This document shows, in pieces, positions 1,130-15,194 of a stretch of DNA of 64,000 nucleotides (the first letter of the stretch is position 1; the number at the start of each line of letters is the position of its first letter). Where the stretch lies: the NCBI GenBank assembly GCA_950097015.1, contig CATNEN010000012.1, positions 1,364,001 through 1,428,000 on the forward strand, written 5' to 3'. Both the position numbers and the translations under genes were made by a program. This DNA comes from Macrostomum hystrix (lineage: Eukaryota > Animalia > Platyhelminthes). Below the pieces are notes generated by a model. That model did not search any database, was not told the origin of the DNA, and saw nothing but the letters and a program-made list of their open reading frames with translations.

Positions 1130-1610
1130 TGACTTAAAAGCGACTTATACTCGTACTATTCAAGCACTACTTAAACGACTCTAAAACTTTTAAAAGAAAC
1201 CCAAACGCTACGACGATACCTCAAACACTTCTAAAACTACTCAAAATTTTCTGCAACGACTCAAACATTTCTAAAACGACTTTAACGATGCTAAAAGGAC
1301 CCAAACACTTCTAAAACGACTCAATCGCTTCTAAAACGACTGAAACGCTTCTAGCGACAAGCGACCCAAACACTTCTAAAACGACAAACGCTTCTAAAGC
1401 GACTTAAACGTTACTAAAACGACCCAAACGCTTCTAAAACGACTTTAACGCTAGTAAAACAACCAAAACACTTCTAAAACGACCCAAACGCTACTAAAAA
1501 TTCTTTAAAAACGCGTCTACATCGGCTCAAAAGCTTCTAAAACAACTTAAACAATTCTGTAACAACTCAAGCGCTACTAAAACTACACAAACGGTTCTAA
1601 AACGACTTAA
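1130..1610. repeat. Degenerate ~20-bp repeat (CTTCTAAAACGACTCAAA-like)
   Basis: Recurrent TTCTAAAACGAC. Confidence 0.7.
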
Positions 1611-1690
1611 GTCCACTTCATCCTGTTCAGATACACAGGAATTCCACGGTGCATCCATCTGTATGTGAATCTATTTCTTGACTTTTGCAG

Positions 1691-4600
1691 GACACAGCCG
1701 GTCAGGAGCGATACCGAACCATCACCACAGCCTATTATCGGGGCGCCATGGGCTTCATACTAATGTACGACGTCACTAATGAGGACTCGTTTAATGCCGT
1801 GCAAGACTGGTGAGTCTCTCTCTTTGCTAAGAGACACTTTTTGCTTCTCTTCCAAGCCTTTCATGTTGTGTCACCCAGTTGCACGATAGCAGATATCCCA
1901 AGGGCACAATATTGATCGCTGCTTATAAGTGTTTGACCATTTACGCTTCCAAATTGTTAATGGCTAAATTGATAATACTTGAAAACGCAACCATGCAAGA
2001 TGACTGATTTCCATGGTATATTTCATTTTACTCATTCGCAGTCTCTCCTAGTAAAGATCTTTATTGCGCTCATACAACTCAGTTCCTAATGAAATATTTT
2101 TCTGCTCAAAAATTGACCCTTCCGACTGTAGACTTATGTCTAAAAGTAAAAATATTTATTTTGCGTTCTACTATAATTTATTCGTTGTTTTATTTCATAA
2201 TCTAAAATGTATTTAGTTTGTTATACTTGTAAACTTTACGCAAAATGAATGTCACCAATTATGTTAACGGTTAGCTTTATTGCACATTATTAATTATCTT
2301 CGATTATAATATTTCTCTCTGTTCAAATTTGACCCCGTCTCCTAGAGTTAGGGAAGGTTTTTCGGTGTGTACATTAAATCTCGTCCCCCATGGTTCGGCA
2401 AGATTGGTCGGAGTGTACATTAAATCTTGTCCCCTATGGTTCGGAAATGTTGTTCGGAGTGTACATTAAATCTCGTCCCCCATGGTTCGGCAAGGTTGGT
2501 CGGAGTGTACATTAAATCTCGTCCCCCATGGTTCGGCAAGATTGGTCGGAGTGTACATTAAATCTTGTCCCCTATGGTTCGGGAACGTTGTTCGGAGTGT
2601 ACATTAAATCTCGTCTGCTTCGGCAAGGTTGGTCGGAGTGTACGAGTACATTAAATCTCGTCCCCCATGGTTCGGCAAGGTTGGTCGGAGTTTACATTAA
2701 ATCTTGTCCCCTATGGTTCGGGAAGGTTGTTCGGAGTGTACATTTAATCTCGTCTGCTTCGGCAAGGTTGGTCGGAGTGTACGAGTACATTAAATCTCGT
2801 CCCCCATGGTTCGGGAAGGTTGTTCGGAGTGTACATTAGTCTTGTCCCCCATGGTTCGGGAAGGTTGTTCAGTGTGTACGTTGAATCTCGTCCTCCATGG
2901 TTCGGGAAGGTTGGTCAGTGCGTACGTTGAATCTCGTCCCTCATTTTTAGGGAAGGCTTGTACGTTGAATCTCCTACCCCAGGGTTCTATGGTTCGGGAA
3001 CGTTCAACGGTGTGTATATAAAATATCGTCTCCGCTGTACACTGACTCTGTTAGCTGTCCAAACCGCAAACGATCAACCAATAAACTCATAAAAGGGTGA
3101 CTCTGGTGCGCGGCCAGGCCTGGCAGGGTGCCGTTGTTGTTTTGGTTGGCAACAAGTGCGATTGCCAGCCAGCGCAACGCCGCGTCGACACAAAAACAGC
3201 GCAGAAGCTGGCAAATGAGCTGGGTGCGAGCTGGATCTTTGGATGAGATAGATCTTTATTCTGCCTTTAATCTGGTTTTTTATTTCTACTTAATTTAAGA
3301 AACAGTTCGATTTGGTTCAATATCTTTGCTCCAGGCACTCACTGTATTGCAGTTATGGTGGTTGGTTTTTGGTTTTGTTTGCTTTGAGCTTAAAAATTCA
3401 AGTTTAAAATATGTTACTTTTCTGTGAGTTTCTCAGACATCTAGTACTTTTATTTGGGTTCATATTTATGGTTATAATGAAAGAATTAGTGGTTTTATCA
3501 CATGGGACAGTATTACGAGTATTAGAAGTAATGCTTCCACACACTGTATCGCATCCAGGGTGACTGCGATCCAGTCTCACTCATGGTCTACGGCTCAGAT
3601 TGCCCTCATTGGCAACAAGTGCGACCTTGAGGATGCACGCATTGTGTCAACAGAGCGCGGGGCCAGACTTGCTCACGATCTGGGTAGTTGCCAGTCATAA
3701 GAAGGCTTTTATATTTTTATCTGTTTATTTCTTGCTTAGCGTTGCTGCATTAGTTGGTGTCTATTTGGTGTACCATTAAGCTTTAAAGATTTCTCTGTGT
3801 TTGTGCGCAGCGCTACGTGTCCTGTAACAACTCATTAACAGTTTTCGTCTGCGTTAAATTAACGGTCTTATCTGATGTAGGTTAACAGTAGAAAGACCAC
3901 TAAGGGGGGCATTTCAAATTTCCTCATTTTTCTTTTTCTTCTGTATCTCCTTAAATATTCAACCGATCGCCATGAAAATGCAGAACACGGGCTAAACTTG
4001 TCCGCTCTATCCGATGAAACGACGTCCAGAAACACAAAACATCGGCATCGTCAAGAGTTCCAATCATTCTCGTCGGGTGTCGAGTGTCTGCTCACAAATT
4101 TCTATTATGTAATTCATCATATATTGTATTGAGTATATTGTTAACAGTAGGACTACCAAGCCATTTTGCCGCCCGTTTTTATACCAAGGGGGGGATTTTT
4201 CTTGAAAATGAGAACATTTTATGGCAGCACCTGAAAGCTAACCGCGTAGGGTGGTGACTGATTGGTTGACAGACTAGGCGATGGTGTACTGTAGTTGAGC
4301 TGCTGAGCTACTGTAGTTTAGGCTTCAGCACTGAAATTTAAAAAATTCACGTTAGGGTGTCCAGAGTGGCCTATTTCCACATTTTTTGCATTTGAAGGTC
4401 CCGCAGTCCGTCTAGACAAAGGTAGGTGCCCACCGAAGACGGAGATGATGCAGGCACATTCGGGTGACATGCTGATAAAGTTTGAAGGTCTGGAAAGACC
4501 GCACTGAGGCGCAGTGCAAATTCGTGTCTAGGGGTGTATGAAATACACTAGCTCTTATGGGAAAAATCGGACCTTCGGCCAGAAACATTGAATATCTCGA

Positions 4601-6334
4601 CGGTCTGAAGAGCTGGCGACTTGTTTCTTGTTTCAGAAGATGCGCAACAAAAAATTTGGCCGTGTTCTTGAGTTTCGTGTGCTTGCATTGTTCCGTTCGG
4701 GTGCAGCAAAAAAACTGTCCACATTGGTTGTCCACACCCTACGGAAATTCCCCCCTTGGTAGTTCTACTGTTAATAACTATACGACTTATTGTACCATGG
4801 ACTGAACAGCTGCTGTACACACAAAGGAAGTAAATTTTTTTATTATCTCGAATTTAGTATTTATAAAAATTAAAAAATGCATATAAACTTATTGTCATTC
4901 TTTTGTTTGTCTTTCTATTGCTTTTTGCTTAGTTTTTTAAATTAAATAATGCTCATAATTGGAATACACAACAATGCTCCCAGGTGCACCCAGATCAGGG
5001 CGCACGCCTGGCAGGATGCGGTGATTGTTCTGGTTGGCAATAAATGCGACCAGCGGCAGTCGCGTTGCATTACGGAGGCTAGCGGCCAATCGTTGGCCAA
5101 TCAGATGGGTAAACCAATCAGACGTGTAACCAATTAGGCCTGTAACCAGTCGGGTAGCCAATCAGACGTCTAACCAATCAGACGTGTAACCAATCAGACG
5201 TGTAACCAATTAGGCCTGTAACCAGTCGGGTAGCCAATCAGACGTCTAACCAATCAGACGTGTAACCAATCAGACGTGTAACCAATTAGGCCTGTAACCA
5301 GTCGGGTAGCCAATCAGACGTGTAACCTATCAGATGGGTAACCAATCAGATAGCGCCGATAGTTTAGCCAATGAAATCTTAACTCACTGTAGTAGCTTTG
5401 CTCATAATTGGCGGGCATCAAGACGTATTTGTAATGAATTATACTGCAAAGGCTTTGTTTCTAAATTGTCTGTCTGTGCTGTCAATCATTATCTCAATTC
5501 TCTCCTTATGAACGCTTCTTAATTCAAAATACATTTTCCTCTACATGTCTCCGTTATCTTAATTTGTTGTTTGCTTTGTTTAACAATTAACAGTTTTCTG
5601 ATAATATTTACACGCCATTTACTCGTACCATCATTTACCAACCCAGGCCTCGAGTTCTTTGAAACTTCCGCCAAAGAGAACATCAATGTCAAAGCTGTAT
5701 TCGAACGCTTGGTTGACGTCATCTGCGACAAGATGGCCGAATCGCTGGACTGCGATCCCAACCTGGCTAGCGGAGCCGGTGAGTTGGCCTTCCAGTTGAA
5801 TCTGATTAGTAAGGCCACCTTAAGCAAGTGGCATTAAGTTCGTTTGCTCTTCTTCATTTTTTTAAATTCCTTTGGATTGTCTGTTTCTAAAAATAGATAC
5901 TACAACACCAAAAATGGGTTCTCCAATGTTTCTAAAAATAGCTTCAACAACCTAGAGAGGGATTCTCCAAAATAATTCTAAAAATAGAAAAAAGAACCTT
6001 AAGAGGTGTTCTTCAAAAGCTTTCAGGTTTCTAAAATAGCAACAAAAACAAGCTAAGTGGAGTTCACTAATTTTTTTACAGGCTTTTAAAAATAGTAACA
6101 GCTCAACCTCTCTAGGCCAATCAGATCTTACGTCCTCTTCGTGCTGTCTAGTTTTTAATTTGATTAGAGCAAACTAGAACTGCACCTACACCTTTATCAT
6201 TAATTAAACTGCACATTCTGTACTATTCACTAAGTTTCATAATCCGTTTTTGTCCATTTTCATAACTCTTGCGCACAGGCACCCGCCTACAGGACGGTCG
6301 CGACAAGCAAGCAAACGGTAGCTGCAGCTGCTGA
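1691..6334 (+). CDS. RAB3: Rab3 small GTPase, 3' portion (5' exon(s) not found in window); exons 1691-1809, one of [3096-3223 | 3559-3683 | 4984-5108], 5647-5778, 6279-6334
   Basis: Exon 1691-1809 reads [40 protein letters not shown] (Rab3 switch II). 5647-5778 reads [34 protein letters not shown]. The last exon ends GSCSC* (CxC prenylation motif). All AG/GT sites are present and phases join (2, 1, 1). Confidence 0.95.
2350..3000. repeat. ~44-bp intronic minisatellite (GTACATTAAATCTCGTCCCCCATGGTTCGG...)
   Basis: More than 12 tandem copies with variants. Confidence 0.9.
3096..3223 (+). CDS. RAB3: Rab3 alternative exon A ([43 protein letters not shown])
   Basis: 128 nt, AG..GT bounded, open frame with G4 NKCD motif. 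The acceptor (ctcataaaag) and donor (gtgcga) are weak. Confidence 0.75.
3559..3683 (+). CDS. RAB3: Rab3 alternative exon B ([42 protein letters not shown])
   Basis: 125 nt, AG..GT bounded, same phases as A and C. Closest to the canonical Rab3 sequence. Confidence 0.88.
4984..5108 (+). CDS. RAB3: Rab3 alternative exon C ([42 protein letters not shown])
   Basis: 125 nt, cag acceptor and gtaaac donor, NKCD motif, same phases. Confidence 0.85.
5094..5350. repeat. 16-bp AACCAATCAGACGTGT repeat with 76-bp higher-order period
   Basis: CAATTAGG at 5131, 5207 and 5283. Confidence 0.85.
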
Positions 6335-6719
6335 GTGCTGGCCAGCTAGAATCTGAGCATTGTTAATCTTCCGCCGCAGGTGCGAACACCTCGGGATTAG
6401 CTAACTACACAGTCAGTTCAATAGTTAGCTTTGAGTTCTATGGCGATCTGCGTAAATTAAGAGGACTAAATTAACGTAAATTAATCTGTGTAGTTTCAGA
6501 TTCTTCAAGTCCTGACGATTGTGTGTCTCGGCTGTGTCCGCTTGCATCGTGTTCGTTCATTTTTTATTTCTCCCTCCTGCTTTTTGTGTGCTGCGCAATT
6601 TTCGCTTGCTTTACAAATATCTTAATGAGAAAATATTTTACATCATCACACTGCCACTCAGGAAAATTACTCACTTGAGAATAGGGTTCGCTTGAGTACT
6701 CCGTGCTTAAGTATGCATC

Positions 6720-8856
6720 GCCATACTGTGCTTGAGTACAAGTCGCCATTGAGTAGACAGTCCTGTTGGGTAGACTGTGCTTGAGTACAAGTCGCCCTTG
6801 AGTAGGCAGTCCTATTGGGTAGACTGTGCTTGAGTACAAGTCGCCCTTGAGTAGGCAGTCCTATTGAGTAGACTGTGCTTGAGTACAAGTCGCCCTTGAG
6901 TAGACAGTCCTATTGAGTAGACTGTGCTTGAGTACAAGTCGCCCTTGAGTAGGCAGTCCTGTTGGGTAGACTGTGCTTGAGTACAAGTCGCCCTTGAGTA
7001 GGCAGTCCTATTGAGTAGACTGTGCTTGAGTACAAGTCGCCCTTGAGTAGACAGTCCTATTGAGTAGACTGTGCTTGAGTACAAGTCGCCCTTGAGTAGG
7101 CAGTCCTGTTGGGTAGACTGTGCTTGAGTACAAGTCGCCCTTGAGTAGACAGTCCTGTTGGGTAGACTGTGCTTGAGTACAAGTCGCCCTTGAGTAGACA
7201 GTCCTGTTGGGTAGACTGTGCTTGAGTACAAGTCGCCCTTGAGTAGCAGTCCTGTTTGGTAGACTGTGCTTGAGTACAAGTCGCCCTTGAGTAGGCAGTC
7301 CTATTGAGTAGACTGTGCTTGAGTACAAGTCGCCCTTGAGTAGACAGTCCTATTGAGTAGACTGTGCTTGAGTACAAGTCGCCCTTGAGTAGGCAGTCCT
7401 GTTGGGTAGACTGTGCTTGAGTACAAGTCGCCCTTGAGTAGACAGTCCTGTTGGGTAGACTGTGCTTGAGTACAAGTCGCCCTTGAGTAGACAGTCCTGT
7501 TGGGTAGTCTGTGCTTGATTACAAGTCGCCCTTGAGTAGACAGTCCTGTTGGGTAGACTGTGCTTGAGTACAAGTCGCCCTTGAGTAGACAGTCCTGTTG
7601 GGTAGACTGTGCTTGAGTACAAGTCGCCCTTGAGTAGACAGTCCTGTTGGGTAGACTGTGCTTGAGTACAAGTCGCCCTTGAGTAGACAGTCCTGTTGGG
7701 TAGTCTGTGCTTGATTACAAGTCGCCCTTGAGTAGACAGTCCTGTTGGGTAGACTGTGCTTGAGTACAAGTCGCCCTTGAGTAGACAGTCCTGTTGGGTA
7801 GTCTGTGCTTGATTACAAGTCGCCCTTGAGTAGGCAGTCCTATTGAGTAGACTGTGCTTGAGTACAAGTCGCCCTTGAGTAGGCAGTCCTATTGAGTAGA
7901 CTGTGCTTGAGTACAAGTCGCCCTTGAGTAGGCAGTCCTATTGAGTAGACTGTGCTTGAGTACAAGTCGCCCTTGAGTAGGCAGTCCTGTTGGGTAGACT
8001 GTGCTTGAGTACAAGTCGCCCTTGAGTAGGCAGTCCTATTGAGTAAACTGTGCTTGAGTACGAGTCGCCCTTGAGTAGACAGTCCTGTTGGGTAGACTGT
8101 GCTTGAGTACAAGTCGCCCTTGAGTAGGCAGTCCTGTTGGGTAGACTGTGCTTGAGTACAAGTCGCCCTTGAGTAGGCAGTCCTATTGAGTAAACTGTGC
8201 TTGAGTACGAGTCGCCCTTGAGTAGACAGTCCTGTTGGGTAGACTGTGCTTGAGTACAAGTCGCCCTTGAGTAGACAGTCCTGTTGGGTAGACTGTGCTT
8301 GAGTACAAGTCGCCCTTGAGTAGGCAGTCCTATTGAGTAGACTGTGCTTGAGTACAAGTCGCCCTTGAGTAGACAGTCCTGTTGGGTAGACTGTGCTTGA
8401 GTACGAGTCGCCCTTGAGTAGCAGTCCTGTTTGGTAGACTGTGCTTGAGTACAAGTCGCCTTTGAGTAGACAGTCCTGTTGGGTAGACTGTGCTTGAGTA
8501 CAAGTCGCCCTTGAGTAGACAGTCCTGTTGGGTAGACTGTGCTTGAGTACGAGTCGCCCTTGAGTAGACAGTCCTGTTGGGTAGACTGTGCTTGAGTACG
8601 AGTCGCCCTTGAGTAGACAGTCCTGTTGGGTAGACTGTGCTTGAGTACAAGTCGCCCTTGAGTAGACAGTCCTGTTGGGTAGACTGTGCTTGAGTACAAG
8701 TCGCCCTTGAGTAGACAGTCCTGTTGGGTAGACTGTGCTTGAGTACGAGTCGCCCTTGAGTAGCAGTCCTGTTTGGTAGACTGTGCTTGAGTACAAGTCG
8801 CCCTTGAGTAGACAGTCCTGTTGGGTAGACTGTGCTTGAGTACAAGCCTACTCAAG
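6720..8856. repeat. 49-bp tandem array (CTGTGCTTGAGTACAAGTCGCCCTTGAGTAGACAGTCCTGTTGGGTAGA), ~43 copies
   Basis: Direct inspection; explains all overlapping minus-strand ORFs at 6564-8855. Confidence 0.97.
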
Positions 8857-10486
8857 TTCGCGACAGAATGTGATCGAGTAATTTTAATCAGTCATTATTA
8901 GACTATTAGGCAATGTTTTCTTGTGCGGCAGTGATTTGATAATATAGCTTTCAGTGCTGTCAGTCAGTCAGTGAGTCGTATTTTCTCTTAAATTCATGTT
9001 GTCGGTATTTCATTAAACTCATCCATTCGCATTCGAATATTTTTTGTTCATTTTAGTTTTCTATTTCTTTACTAAATACTGGTTGGGTGATCTGACTCAA
9101 TTAATTTATTACAGTTTTCTTCGGTTATACAGTGGTTTGCATTAAATTTAAACTCTCGCCTAGTCAAGGATCTTTGAGACGCCTTTCCGTGTCTTTAGTA
9201 TTCCTTGGTCTAGTGTAAGTTTCCAAAGATATTATTATGTTGGACAGAAGCTACAGGTGTAAATTTCATTAGTAACCTTATTACATGCTTGGTTGTTCTA
9301 GAAACCCAAAGTTAAATTTGATAAATGCTTCTCACTGTTTGGTCTTTTTGGTGTTTTATTCTGTGATAATGTTTAGCTTATTTAAATATTTGTAGTAGTA
9401 CTGCTATTTCCCCGCATTCAGCACGGGGTGACTTTTTCTAGTGTTTCGCTATTACCCGTCAGACCTTATTGTGTTTATAATAATTTAAATACCTTACTCT
9501 ATTGCTTTATTTTATCATTATCTTAACTACTAGTGCAACATAGGTAAGATGTAATCTATGTTTGTCACACATCCTTGCGCCAAAGTACTAAATTTTATTT
9601 TTATGCGCTACATAGTCCTCATTGAAATGTACTTTTAAGCTGACATCACATCAATGATGGCTTCACATGAAGCAGTATAGTATAAGTTATTATAGTCAAT
9701 TAATTTTGTCTTTAATATATCAGTAAGTCGTGAAATGAAGTATATACTGTACCTGTAATAACTCTGCTATTAATTTTTTCCGTCTTTTTTTCAAATAAAA
9801 TGTACCAGCTATTGAGTGTGCTCTCGACAGATTATTTATTCGAGGCGTCTCTTAGTCACTTTTTCTACTGTAGCGACAAGTCATGATTGGGAGGCAGTTG
9901 TTTTGGATAGAAAATAAAGGGAAAATTATTTGGACCAGTGAATTCAGCTCCTGTAATGGTCCGTATCTATATTAAGTGGCTCGAGCCCGCCTGGTGGACT
10001 TATAGAGTCGGTGTCTATAAATAGATCTAAGTGTACATGTCACTGTACAGTGAGAGTGACGGAATGTTAAACTTTAGCCTAGACAAAATCCTAAGCAAAA
10101 CGATTTTAATGTACACCCAGGCCTAGATAAGAGAGTTTTAATGATATACTTCGTCACCGAGCGGGCGCTTAAATTATTATTGTTTCGATAAAATACAAAT
10201 AGAGCCCCCACACTCCACAATGAAACTGAGGGCCCTCTTGACCCAGATGAACTTAATTCACTAAATTTTCAAATTTCTAATCCATAATCGTTAAGGTCCA
10301 TCGGCAAGTTAATGGGCAAGTTTTCAACTTGATGAACAATAATAGTTTTAACTGCATTAACAAAGCCCTGAGAATCACGAATTATATTATTTTCAAAGCA
10401 AAAATAAACAGTTTTTATTGCAGCAATCAAAGAGCCGACACGCCACGCACTGATTACCCGCATTCACTTCAGCCGCATCTAGCCAA

Positions 10487-11731
10487 ATGCAGCCCTGTTC
10501 GGCTAGGTGCCCATCGAAGCTATTCAAATCCGAGTGCGACAGCTTGCGCGACCAGTTGGACACGCTGCGACGCGAGAATGACGCGTTGCGTCAGCAGCGC
10601 AACGCCTTGTCGATGGCCTGCGTCGAGGCGGCCGATAATTCACGCGCTTTTAAAACGGAGGTAGTCGAGTTGCACTACCTGCTGGCTATGAGCATGGTCA
10701 AGGAGCGCGACAGCGAGGCCCAGTCTGTGCTGGCATCGTTGGAGGAGGCCGGTAATGCCGGCGTCGTCGGGCAGGCGCCAACGCCGGCGCTGAAGGCGGC
10801 CGAGGCGATCTGGTGCGATTTTCGGGCTGAGTTAGAGCGCAGTAGGCAGGCACTCAAACAGCTGCGAATGGACTGCCGGTAAAGCCCTATGACTAATCAG
10901 ATGACGAGGCATTCAAATAAAAAAATATAGTCATAGTTACTCTCGGTGTTTACCCAGATCGGCGTCCCCTTAATTGGGATCTGAAATCGGTCAGTTTGTG
11001 ACTACACTATGATTTTGTACAGTTAAATGACTTATAGGGCCTGTATAATTAAAAATAAAATTGACATGGGGGCTAGGCGCCCTGGTACATCATTTGCTGC
11101 CCATTTCGCTGACTCCTGAGCACACATACGCACTCACACTAGTGTGTACATCAGCCCTGACTTTCTCATCATCAGGCAGTGTACACTCTCACTGTGCCTT
11201 GGAGGTTGGCCCTCAAGGGCGCGAATCGCACGACTAGCCCTCAAACCTCACAAACGAAACGAACTCAATGCTTATATGGATATTATATTCACCGTTAAAC
11301 TCTTCCAACCAGATCTCACGTGGACGAAGATTCATTTTCGGCGGCCGATGTGAAGTCCCAGTTCCAGAAGTTGGTGCCGCGAGCGCCGCGCAAGCCGGAC
11401 CTGGCCGCCTTAAGGCAGGAGGCCTCTACTGCCAGCCAGCCAGTGCCGCCGCCGCCGTCACCGCCGCAGTCGCTGAAGGCACCGCAGTCGGCGGGTTTCG
11501 GTGCCGCTCCGGCGGCGAGGCCCAGATCAATTAAAGTCAGCCTGCCGTGCAACAGCCTGCCTGGCCCAACTGCGGCAGTCGGGGCGGGCACAGCTGCAGC
11601 AGCGGCAAGTAGTACCGGCGACCAGCTTCCAGAGCAGCAGAAGGCCGCCCTCAAGTACATGTCAACTGTGCAGAGGGTGAGTGGAATTAAGTTTATTACA
11701 AGCTACTTATTACTTACTTACTTACTGCTAT

Positions 11732-11773
<42 letters not shown>

Positions 11774-12367
11774 TTAATGGGAAATTAGTGTCTTGCTTAA
11801 GTTTGCCAAATGTTTTCTATGGACTAAGATTCGAACTCCCGACGTCTCGGTCAGTAATCCAAGGCTCTAACCACCGGGATAGAACCCTGAGAGAACTCAA
11901 GTGCTGTTGCTAGATTTATTGAAAGCCGCTTACAATGCATTTTATTTCAGGTGCTGCCCCATGTGACAATAGAGCAGGTTAGCCGAGCACTAGCCAGCAT
12001 TAGTCTGAGACCGGGTGCTCAAATTGAGCTGCAGCTGATCAATATTCTCATCGATCAGCATCAGGCGCGTCAGCAGCAGTTCAAGCAGCAGCAGCCAGTC
12101 TCTCTGCGTGGCTACAACGGCGCTGGTGCCTTCAAGCTAAACGGAAGCCGAGCTGCGGCGTCGACATCGCCTTCAGTTGACGAGGCCGTTTGTCCGGTGT
12201 GCCAGGACAGTCTGGACCAGGGCGAGCAATTGTGCCGTCTCGACTGCCAGCATCTGTTTCACGACGCTTGCATTAGGCGCTGGCTGCAGGAGTGCTCGGT
12301 GTGTCCCACCTGTCGCAATTACTCGCTATTGTCGGATGAATATCCTAAACTGCATGTGGGATATTAA
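10487..12367 (+). CDS. Coiled-coil plus C-terminal RING-H2 E3 ligase, DZIP3/TTC3-like; exons 10487-10878, 11313-11676, 11951-12367 (~390 aa; 5' end uncertain)
   Basis: Phases join (2, 0). The C-terminus CPVC-x-C-x-HLFH-xx-C-xxx-W-x-CPTC..LLSDEYP is a RING-H2 with a DZIP3-like tail. The N-terminal exon has coiled-coil character (CDSLRDQLDTLRRENDAL). Confidence 0.8.
11710..11888 (-). mobile_element. Diverged SINE copy (antisense) in an intron of the RING-H2 gene, with (TAG)n/(TAAG)n tail
   Basis: The minus strand reads TGGTTAGAGC..GTTCGAATC..CTTAAGCAAGACACTAA followed by simple repeats. Confidence 0.6.
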
Positions 12368-14504: not shown

Positions 14505-15194
14505 ATGCTGCCGGCCCCCTTATTCGACTATCAGTTTCGCGTCATCATCATCGGGGACACGATGGTCGGCAAGTCCTCGCTTGTGCGCTACTTTGTCGAA
14601 GGCACCCCGGACACCGCCTGCGAGGCCACAGTTGGTGTTGATTTCTTTGCTCGAGTTGTCCAACTGCCCGACGGTTGCCGGGTGAAGCTGACACTGTGGG
14701 ACACGGCCGGGCACGAGAAATTCCGCTCCATCACCCGCTCCTATTATCGCAACGCTGTCGCAGCCTTGATAGTCTACGATGTCACCAATCGTTCTAGCTT
14801 GGCCAGCGTGCCTGCTTGGCTTAAAGAGGCCCGCCTGAATATGACCTGCACCGACCCCGGCCTGCTGCTGGTCGGCCAGAAAGCCGACATGACCAGCCAC
14901 AGAACGGTGGGCCGCGAGGAAGCCGTCAGCTTAGCCGACCAGTTGGGCTTGGCCTATGTTGAAACTTCCGCAATCAGCGGCCACAATGTGGAGGCCTGCT
15001 TTCGCGCCCTGGCCGAGCGGGTCTACTGCCTGCTCGTGGCTGGCCGCTACTCCGCAATGTCGCCCGACTGGGACGGCGTGCGAGTCGGTCGCGCCGCGGC
15101 GACTTCTTCTTTGCCGACTGCGGTTCGATTGACAGCTAATTATGGCGAATCTGGCGAAGCTGCCACTCAGTCCGGATCTGGCTGCTGTGCGTGA
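14505..15194 (+). CDS. RAB39: Rab39-like small GTPase, intronless, 229 aa
   Basis: YQFRVIIIGDTMVGKSS, TVGVDFFAR, LWDTAGHEKFRSITRSYYRN, ETSA, WDGVRVG and terminal CCA match the Rab39 subfamily pattern. Confidence 0.85.
   Translation: MLPAPLFDYQFRVIIIGDTMVGKSSLVRYFVEGTPDTACEATVGVDFFARVVQLPDGCRVKLTLWDTAGHEKFRSITRSYYRNAVAALIVYDVTNRSSLASVPAWLKEARLNMTCTDPGLLLVGQKADMTSHRTVGREEAVSLADQLGLAYVETSAISGHNVEACFRALAERVYCLLVAGRYSAMSPDWDGVRVGRAAATSSLPTAVRLTANYGESGEAATQSGSGCCA

Follow-up and report, generated by a model that had tools for sequence, protein, structure and literature searches.

A tandem-triplicated exon covering the RabCDR2 loop and helix alpha4 in a Rab3 gene of the flatworm Macrostomum hystrix

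Rab3 is a vesicle GTPase of regulated exocytosis that works through several effectors, RIM and rabphilin among them, and how it selects between them is a matter of continuing debate. A stretch of 64,000 nucleotides (nt) from the genome of Macrostomum hystrix (assembly GCA_950097015.1, contig CATNEN010000012.1, positions 1,364,001 to 1,428,000 of the forward strand), here called the window and numbered from its first letter, raises the question of whether a single Rab3 gene can vary the surface on which such choices depend by exchanging one exon for another. On its plus strand lies a Rab3-type GTPase gene, represented by its 3' two thirds, in which one exon is present in three diverged tandem copies, here called A, B and C. 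A reading made from the letters alone (below, the sequence-only reading) had proposed that this one gene makes three Rab3 isoforms with different effector surfaces, where vertebrates have the Rab3A-D paralogues. Our analysis indicates that it is probably one gene whose three copies are used as mutually exclusive alternatives: all three are conserved under purifying selection, and two of them, A and C, are found spliced between the same constant exons.

The window starts downstream of the first coding exon; in Macrostomum lignano this exon encodes amino acids (aa) 1-73, with the P-loop (G1) and switch I (G2), and this G1/G2 region is present in the M. lignano orthologue P0155. The remaining coding exons are as follows.

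1691-1809, plus strand: constant exon 'up', from the G3 motif DTAGQE to AVQD and the first two bases of a Trp codon
3096-3223, plus strand: alternative exon A, 128 nt, loop motif QAWQGAV, with one additional codon after GNKCD
3559-3683, plus strand: alternative exon B, 125 nt, loop motif HSWSTAQ, of the three the most like canonical Rab3
4984-5108, plus strand: alternative exon C, 125 nt, loop motif HAWQDAV
5647-5778, plus strand: constant exon 'dn', with beta6 and LEFFETSAK (G5 ETSAK), to the end of helix alpha5
6279-6334, plus strand: last coding exon, with the hypervariable tail, the CSC prenylation motif and the stop codon

The sequence-only reading had described three homologous exons of 128, 125 and 125 nt that share a phase and a W...(V/I)GNKCD signature. 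Its coordinates for them proved correct to the base, and we refine it by placing the end of the downstream exon at 5778 and the start of the last coding exon at 6279. Each copy is directly preceded by AG and directly followed by GT; its first base completes the Trp codon begun in up, and its last base opens a Gly codon that is completed in dn. Joining up to exactly one of A, B and C, then to dn and the last exon, gives an open C-terminal two thirds of Rab3 ending in ...GSCSC and a stop codon; joining zero, two or three copies brings stop codons into frame, as had been predicted. Because 125 and 128 are both 2 mod 3, exclusivity is enforced by the reading frame. Between the copies, identity is 53-63% at the nt level and 39-49% at the aa level, and the invariant positions are the W, the (V/I)GNKCD motif and a few helix residues. 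No fourth copy of the exon was found by tblastn within the window, and the up, dn and last exons are single-copy in the region. The acceptors are weak and purine-rich at the alternative exons and strong at the constant ones. We also noted a 16-nt repeat, CCAATCAGACGTGTAA, of which about 16 copies occupy 5097-5350. The array starts in the last 12 bases of exon C and extends into the intron, so that the donor region of exon C is the first unit of the CCAATCAGACGTGTAA array.

Both the constant exons and the exchanged ones carry the marks of Rab3. The Rab motifs are in place, with G3 DTAGQE and the switch II family motifs in up, GNKCD in each of A, B and C, and ETSAK in dn, and the C terminus has a CXC double-prenylation motif (GSCSC, then stop). 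The translation of up is 100% identical to M. lignano Rab3 at the aa level, a search with a constant exon retrieves Rab3 proteins, and the M. lignano orthologue is about 65-72% identical to the animal Rab3 proteins listed. When the peptides of the three copies were matched to solved structures, the top match was in each case a Rab3 chain, at about residues 104-142 of Rab3A in the rabphilin complex 1ZBD; the match scores to Rab3 in the PDB were 46 bits for B, 35 bits for C and 24 bits for A, and the top matches were Rab3A-D.

The swapped segment comprises the end of alpha3, the alpha3/beta5 loop (Rab complementarity-determining region 2, RabCDR2, or RabSF3), beta5, the G4 motif NKCD and alpha4. 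This agrees with the earlier assignment to the alpha3-beta5 loop, G4 and alpha4, including an effector complementarity-determining region that contacts rabphilin, both by the 1ZBD match and by the published descriptions (PMC4552854, PMC9308819). Within the alpha3/beta5 loop, RabCDR2 corresponds to the WDN motif, whose residues touch the SGAWFF element of rabphilin (PMC9308819, PMC4552854). The WDN position reads WST in B, WQD in C and WQG in A, and most of alpha4 also differs among the exons. Judging from the residues exchanged, it is plausible that the A, B and C isoforms differ in their coupling to effectors or regulators.

A comparison with M. lignano tells whether the copies are maintained. 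We reached M. lignano proteins by a search with a constant exon and, from them, two genomic copies of the gene, L001 and L002, with 94% identity between the two. Both carry A-B-C in the same order, with the same lengths (128/125/125), phases and AG/GT sites. The same triplication, which the sequence-only reading had proposed to look for, is thus present in a related flatworm. When the window is aligned to L001, only the exons align and the introns are unalignable. For each aligned exon of this pair we calculated the ratio of nonsynonymous to synonymous rates (dN/dS) by the NG86 method and applied a Fisher test of whether the proportion of nonsynonymous differences (pN) is lower than that of synonymous differences (pS).

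up: nt identity of the aligned block 88%, dN/dS 0 (dN = 0), Fisher p = 1.3e-9
exon A: nt identity 90%, dN/dS 0.018, Fisher p = 2e-8, 41/42 aa identical
exon B: nt identity 78%, dN/dS 0.017, Fisher p = 5e-13, aa identity 90%, pS 0.75 and pN 0.07
exon C: nt identity 72%, dN/dS 0.117, Fisher p = 2e-6, aa identity 66%
dn: nt identity 90%, dN/dS 0.055, Fisher p = 1.9e-6

The pooled constant exons gave a dN/dS of 0.037. As pN is far below pS for each of the three copies, A, B and C are all maintained as coding sequence and none is a dead copy; a dN/dS measurement exon by exon, proposed earlier as a check, hence finds purifying selection on all of them. In the same comparison, pS is 0.75, that is, saturated, in B and C and about 0.4 in up, A and dn. 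The lower values hint that synonymous sites are constrained in those exons that make up the most abundant mRNA, although some 40 codons per exon are a weak basis for this. Four M. lignano protein models were found: the GenBank proteins PAA51520 and PAA74454 and the UniRef model P0277 have a C-type exon, and the UniRef model P0001 mis-joins A to part of C.

To follow the use of the exons we compared Logan contigs from four runs (X1 to X4) of one study with positions 1600-6400. The runs are not labelled as RNA; their contigs behave as RNA, since GT..AG junctions are present and most intron sequence is uncovered. The junctions of exon A, 1809>3096 and 3223>5647, occur in all four runs at a depth of 15-25, and one contig, also found in every run, consists of 28 nt of up, the complete exon A (128 nt) and 30 nt of dn. 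Those of exon C, 1809>4984 and 5108>5647, occur in two of the four runs (X2 and X4) at a depth of 12-15. The junction between the last two coding exons, 5778>6279, is present in all runs at a depth of 34-40. Among the joints listed for the four runs, none connects A to B, A to C or B to C. The picture of a single spliced exon beside copies free of purifying selection therefore does not apply to this locus, where A and C are both spliced and all three copies are selected. Read loose ends at 1690 and 3627 (..DGKTIKLQIW and ..GNKCDLTAKKVVDFAT) were considered as an upstream Rab3 exon and rejected, as they belong to a Rab1-like paralogue transcript aligned over conserved motifs.

The same exon is duplicated in other animals. 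In molluscs, '..IKTHAWSNA..' replaces the canonical '..IKTYSWDNAQ..' in the RefSeq X2/X3 isoform models of nine molluscs (Haliotis, Pecten, Mizuhopecten, Ylistrum, Saccostrea, Babylonia, Gigantopelta, Liolophura and Pomacea) and in models from GenBank for another four (Littorina, Patella, Batillaria and Nucella), a range that takes in several snails as well as abalones, scallops, an oyster and a chiton. The Batillaria genome (L004) has tandem 125-nt exons at 8000-8124 and 8827-8951, with AG/GT sites and the same phases and with the variant first. The bdelloid rotifers Didymodactylos carnosus and Adineta steineri have two tandem copies with the canonical one first; those of Didymodactylos (L005), at 1597-1721 and 2231-2355, are 125 nt each and have AG/GT sites. 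The Batillaria, Nucella and rotifer gene models read through both copies, giving over-long proteins with two NKCD motifs, and these models are annotation errors arising from an unrecognised alternative exon pair. In the schistosome Trichobilharzia (L003) the exon is single, and a search that took in the 17-kb following intron found no second copy. The alternative use of this very exon in mollusc Rab3 models counts in favour of alternative use in Macrostomum.

We therefore prefer, with a probability of roughly 70%, the reading that this is one Rab3 gene with a tandem-triplicated 125-nt exon whose three copies are used as mutually exclusive alternatives. The exon encoding the end of alpha3, the RabCDR2 loop, beta5, NKCD and alpha4 is triplicated in tandem, and its copies would be spliced one at a time, transcripts with exactly one copy alone remaining in frame. 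In transcripts with none or two, translation would stop prematurely, after anything from a few codons to about 40, and such transcripts would presumably be cleared by nonsense-mediated decay. The isoforms would have an identical nucleotide switch, membrane anchor, RabCDR1 and RabCDR3 and would differ at the CDR2 loop and the exposed face of alpha4, and they would be expected to choose different effectors or regulators. Because B is the canonical version and is undetected in bulk RNA, it may be used in a cell type, neurons being the most plausible, that is under-represented in RNA of whole animals. Other cells with regulated secretion would be served by C and by A, which is the major form here.

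Several observations weigh against this reading, and the first concerns exon B. Of the junctions foreseen by the sequence-only reading, the four of A and C are seen exactly, but no spliced junction of B is among the joints listed in the four runs; fifteen joints lie outside this listing, and weak splicing of B may be among them. Its proposal of one gene with three isoforms thus holds for A and C, each spliced between the same constant exons, and the case for the third isoform is the selection on its sequence. The only contigs over B have a depth of 4-8 and are colinear with the genome, extending from 3485-3604 to 3759-4007 and running into a multicopy element, and these look like unspliced or read-through RNA. 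Exon B is also found in none of the four M. lignano protein models. A second point is that an all-skip junction, 1809>5647, occurs in three of the four runs at a depth of 15-19, close to that of A. The resulting transcript reads ..QDWPRVL-stop, out of frame, with the stop four codons into dn. Its depth is high for an error product alone and more than expected of a decay target, and since a transcript skipping A, B and C is present at appreciable depth, the selection of one exon is imperfect. The RNA evidence, moreover, consists solely of contigs from one study whose runs are not recorded as RNA. We scanned for RNA pairing by inverted repeats, by a GU-tolerant stem search in the window and L001 and by testing the conserved intron repeat for duplexes, with shuffled sequence as background; no Dscam-type docking/selector pairing was shared between the species or above shuffles, though short or bulged pairings could escape such scans. 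Finally, Drosophila Rab3 with WDN changed to AAA still rescued active-zone organisation (PMC4552854), so that a change in CDR2 need not alter every function.

The alternative that survives best is that only A and C work, the splicing of B having been given up in this lineage or confined to some rare condition, and the conservation of B having another cause. The missing B junctions, the restriction of B to unspliced contigs and its absence from the M. lignano models would all be expected from this, and a short-fragment search with the 41-aa exon B yielded no candidates, a weak negative given the length filter. However, B keeps an open frame, its AG/GT sites, its length and its phase in both species, and it is 90% identical at the aa level despite saturated synonymous sites (pS 0.75 against pN 0.07, as listed above) and flanking introns that cannot be aligned. 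It is also the copy closest to the Rab3 of other animals, and its loss would leave the worm without a canonical Rab3. We consider this alternative unlikely.

Somewhat less probable still is a noisy cassette locus, in which skipping and exon choice would be splicing noise, or a brake on Rab3 output through unproductive splicing, with no function specific to an isoform. The depth of the all-skip junction, similar to that of A in three of the four runs, speaks for such a locus, as does the fact that in runs X1 and X3 the depth of A and that of the all-skip junction add up to the depth of the downstream exon. Noise, however, would not keep each copy's protein sequence under strong purifying selection while the copies stay as distinct as they are (39-49% aa identity), and parallel duplicates of the same exon have been retained in molluscs and rotifers. 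Nothing was found in favour of the notion that each exon comes from a separate overlapping or neighbouring Rab3 paralogue, and it is very improbable: A and C join identical upstream and downstream exons in RNA, which refutes it for these two, the up, dn and last exons are single-copy in the region, and the layout is the same in both M. lignano copies. The window does have another Rab-like gene, at 14505-15194, but this lacks introns and is no more than about 40% identical.

We return to mutually exclusive use of the three copies to ask how old the arrangement is. In a tree of 37 exon peptides over 41 columns, Macrostomum A and C formed one clade (99/97), with A nested beside C, and Macrostomum B fell inside the canonical clade. 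A split with support of 92/85 separated the canonical exons from A and C, and the mollusc variant exons were placed with the latter. Since a single clade of all Macrostomum exons was not rejected by the approximately unbiased (AU) test (p = 0.18), one ancient pair of variant and canonical exons and recurrent duplication in three spiralian phyla both stand. It is possible, and we offer it only tentatively, that the canonical (YSW/HSW) and variant (HAW) exons are one ancient pair that predates the split of flatworms and molluscs, was tripled in Macrostomum and was lost in parasitic flatworms, with the canonical exon serving synaptic Rab3 and the variants serving other effectors in non-neuronal regulated secretion. 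If so, a task for which vertebrates have the Rab3A-D genes would have been solved at the level of an exon, and more than 500 million years ago.

Two further features lie in the introns between these exons.

2347-2956, plus strand: tandem array in the intron upstream of exon A, a 46-nt unit repeated 13 times, with the core GTACAT[TA][AG]AATCT[CT]GTCCCC
3881-4778, no strand assigned: insertion or insertions in the B-C intron resembling a miniature inverted-repeat transposable element (MITE), with inverted ends TTAACAGTAG.ACTACCAAGGGGGG and the inverted repeats I1, I2, I5 and I6

The core motif of the array is also tandem, 4-5 times, at the same relative place in M. lignano (L001 12989-13184, L002 13226-13382), so that the window and the two M. 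lignano copies each have an array 140-200 nt before exon A. It is the sole conserved intronic feature that we found between the window and M. lignano, and the motif does not occur in the rest of the window or of the 26-kb M. lignano loci. By its position and conservation, the array may be a candidate binding site array for a splicing regulator of A, and we regard it as a lead. The MITE-like element is multicopy, since it is covered by RNA contigs at a depth of 100-1700 with many variants. The unspliced contigs over exon B run on into it without a break.

Two neighbouring genes follow Rab3.

about 10485-12352, plus strand: RING-finger gene between Rab3 and the Rab-like gene, syntenic in M. lignano
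14505-15194, plus strand: intronless Rab-like gene of 229 aa, with GQKAD in place of NKxD and a CCA tail, about 40% identical to Rab3

In M. lignano, too, a RING gene and the intronless Rab-like gene lie downstream of Rab3. The Rab-like gene is conserved there at L001 23850-24527 with 79% nt identity, and the UniRef M. lignano models P0001 and P0277 wrongly fuse the RING gene to Rab3.

The sequence-only reading knew of no description of mutually exclusive exons in Rab3. Our literature search likewise found no paper on them, the mollusc THAWSNA models included; the mollusc models themselves, RefSeq isoforms among them, nevertheless already use an alternative copy. The Macrostomum cluster is the first three-exon Rab3 cluster, and it is real, conserved and partly confirmed by RNA. 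It exchanges one of three specificity loops (RabCDR2) together with alpha4 and leaves the switch regions, the other two loops and the anchor constant, and a swap of this RabCDR2/alpha4 exon occurs in three animal phyla. The isoforms are natural chimeras for testing the role of the CDR2/alpha4 face. The cluster also matters for annotation, since these exons are joined wrongly in the present gene models of Macrostomum, gastropods and rotifers.

The nearest likeness is that of the molluscs, whose THAWSNA exon is the same 125-nt exon with the same phases at the same position in Rab3, and whose variant has an H-A-W signature in common with Macrostomum exon C. Molluscs differ in having two copies, with the variant upstream of the canonical one, where Macrostomum has three, and their use of the copies is known from database models. 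The bdelloid rotifers also have this exon in tandem, but the canonical copy comes first, the variants are unlike those of Macrostomum or the molluscs, and the case is known only from read-through gene models. Among other Rab proteins, RAB37 has a tandem-duplicated, homologous pair of mutually exclusive exons common to human and Drosophila, in which the residues that differ between isoforms form a surface patch, and the authors propose that the isoforms bind different proteins (PMC8373072). RAB37 is a secretory Rab like Rab3, but it is a different Rab and its cluster has two exons. RAB6A and RAB6A' (Echard et al. 2000, Mol Biol Cell) reportedly also arise from a mutually exclusive duplicated exon and differ in effector behaviour, with three residues near switch II as the only difference between the exons. 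The Macrostomum Rab3 copies, by contrast, differ at 51-61% of the exon residues. The vertebrate Rab3A-D proteins, finally, also have a common core and differ in RabSF3/CDR2 and alpha4 among other places; they come from duplication of the gene and not of an exon, and their differences are spread over the whole protein and its tail. Set beside them, the Macrostomum gene would be a clean case of exon duplication doing the job of vertebrate gene duplication.

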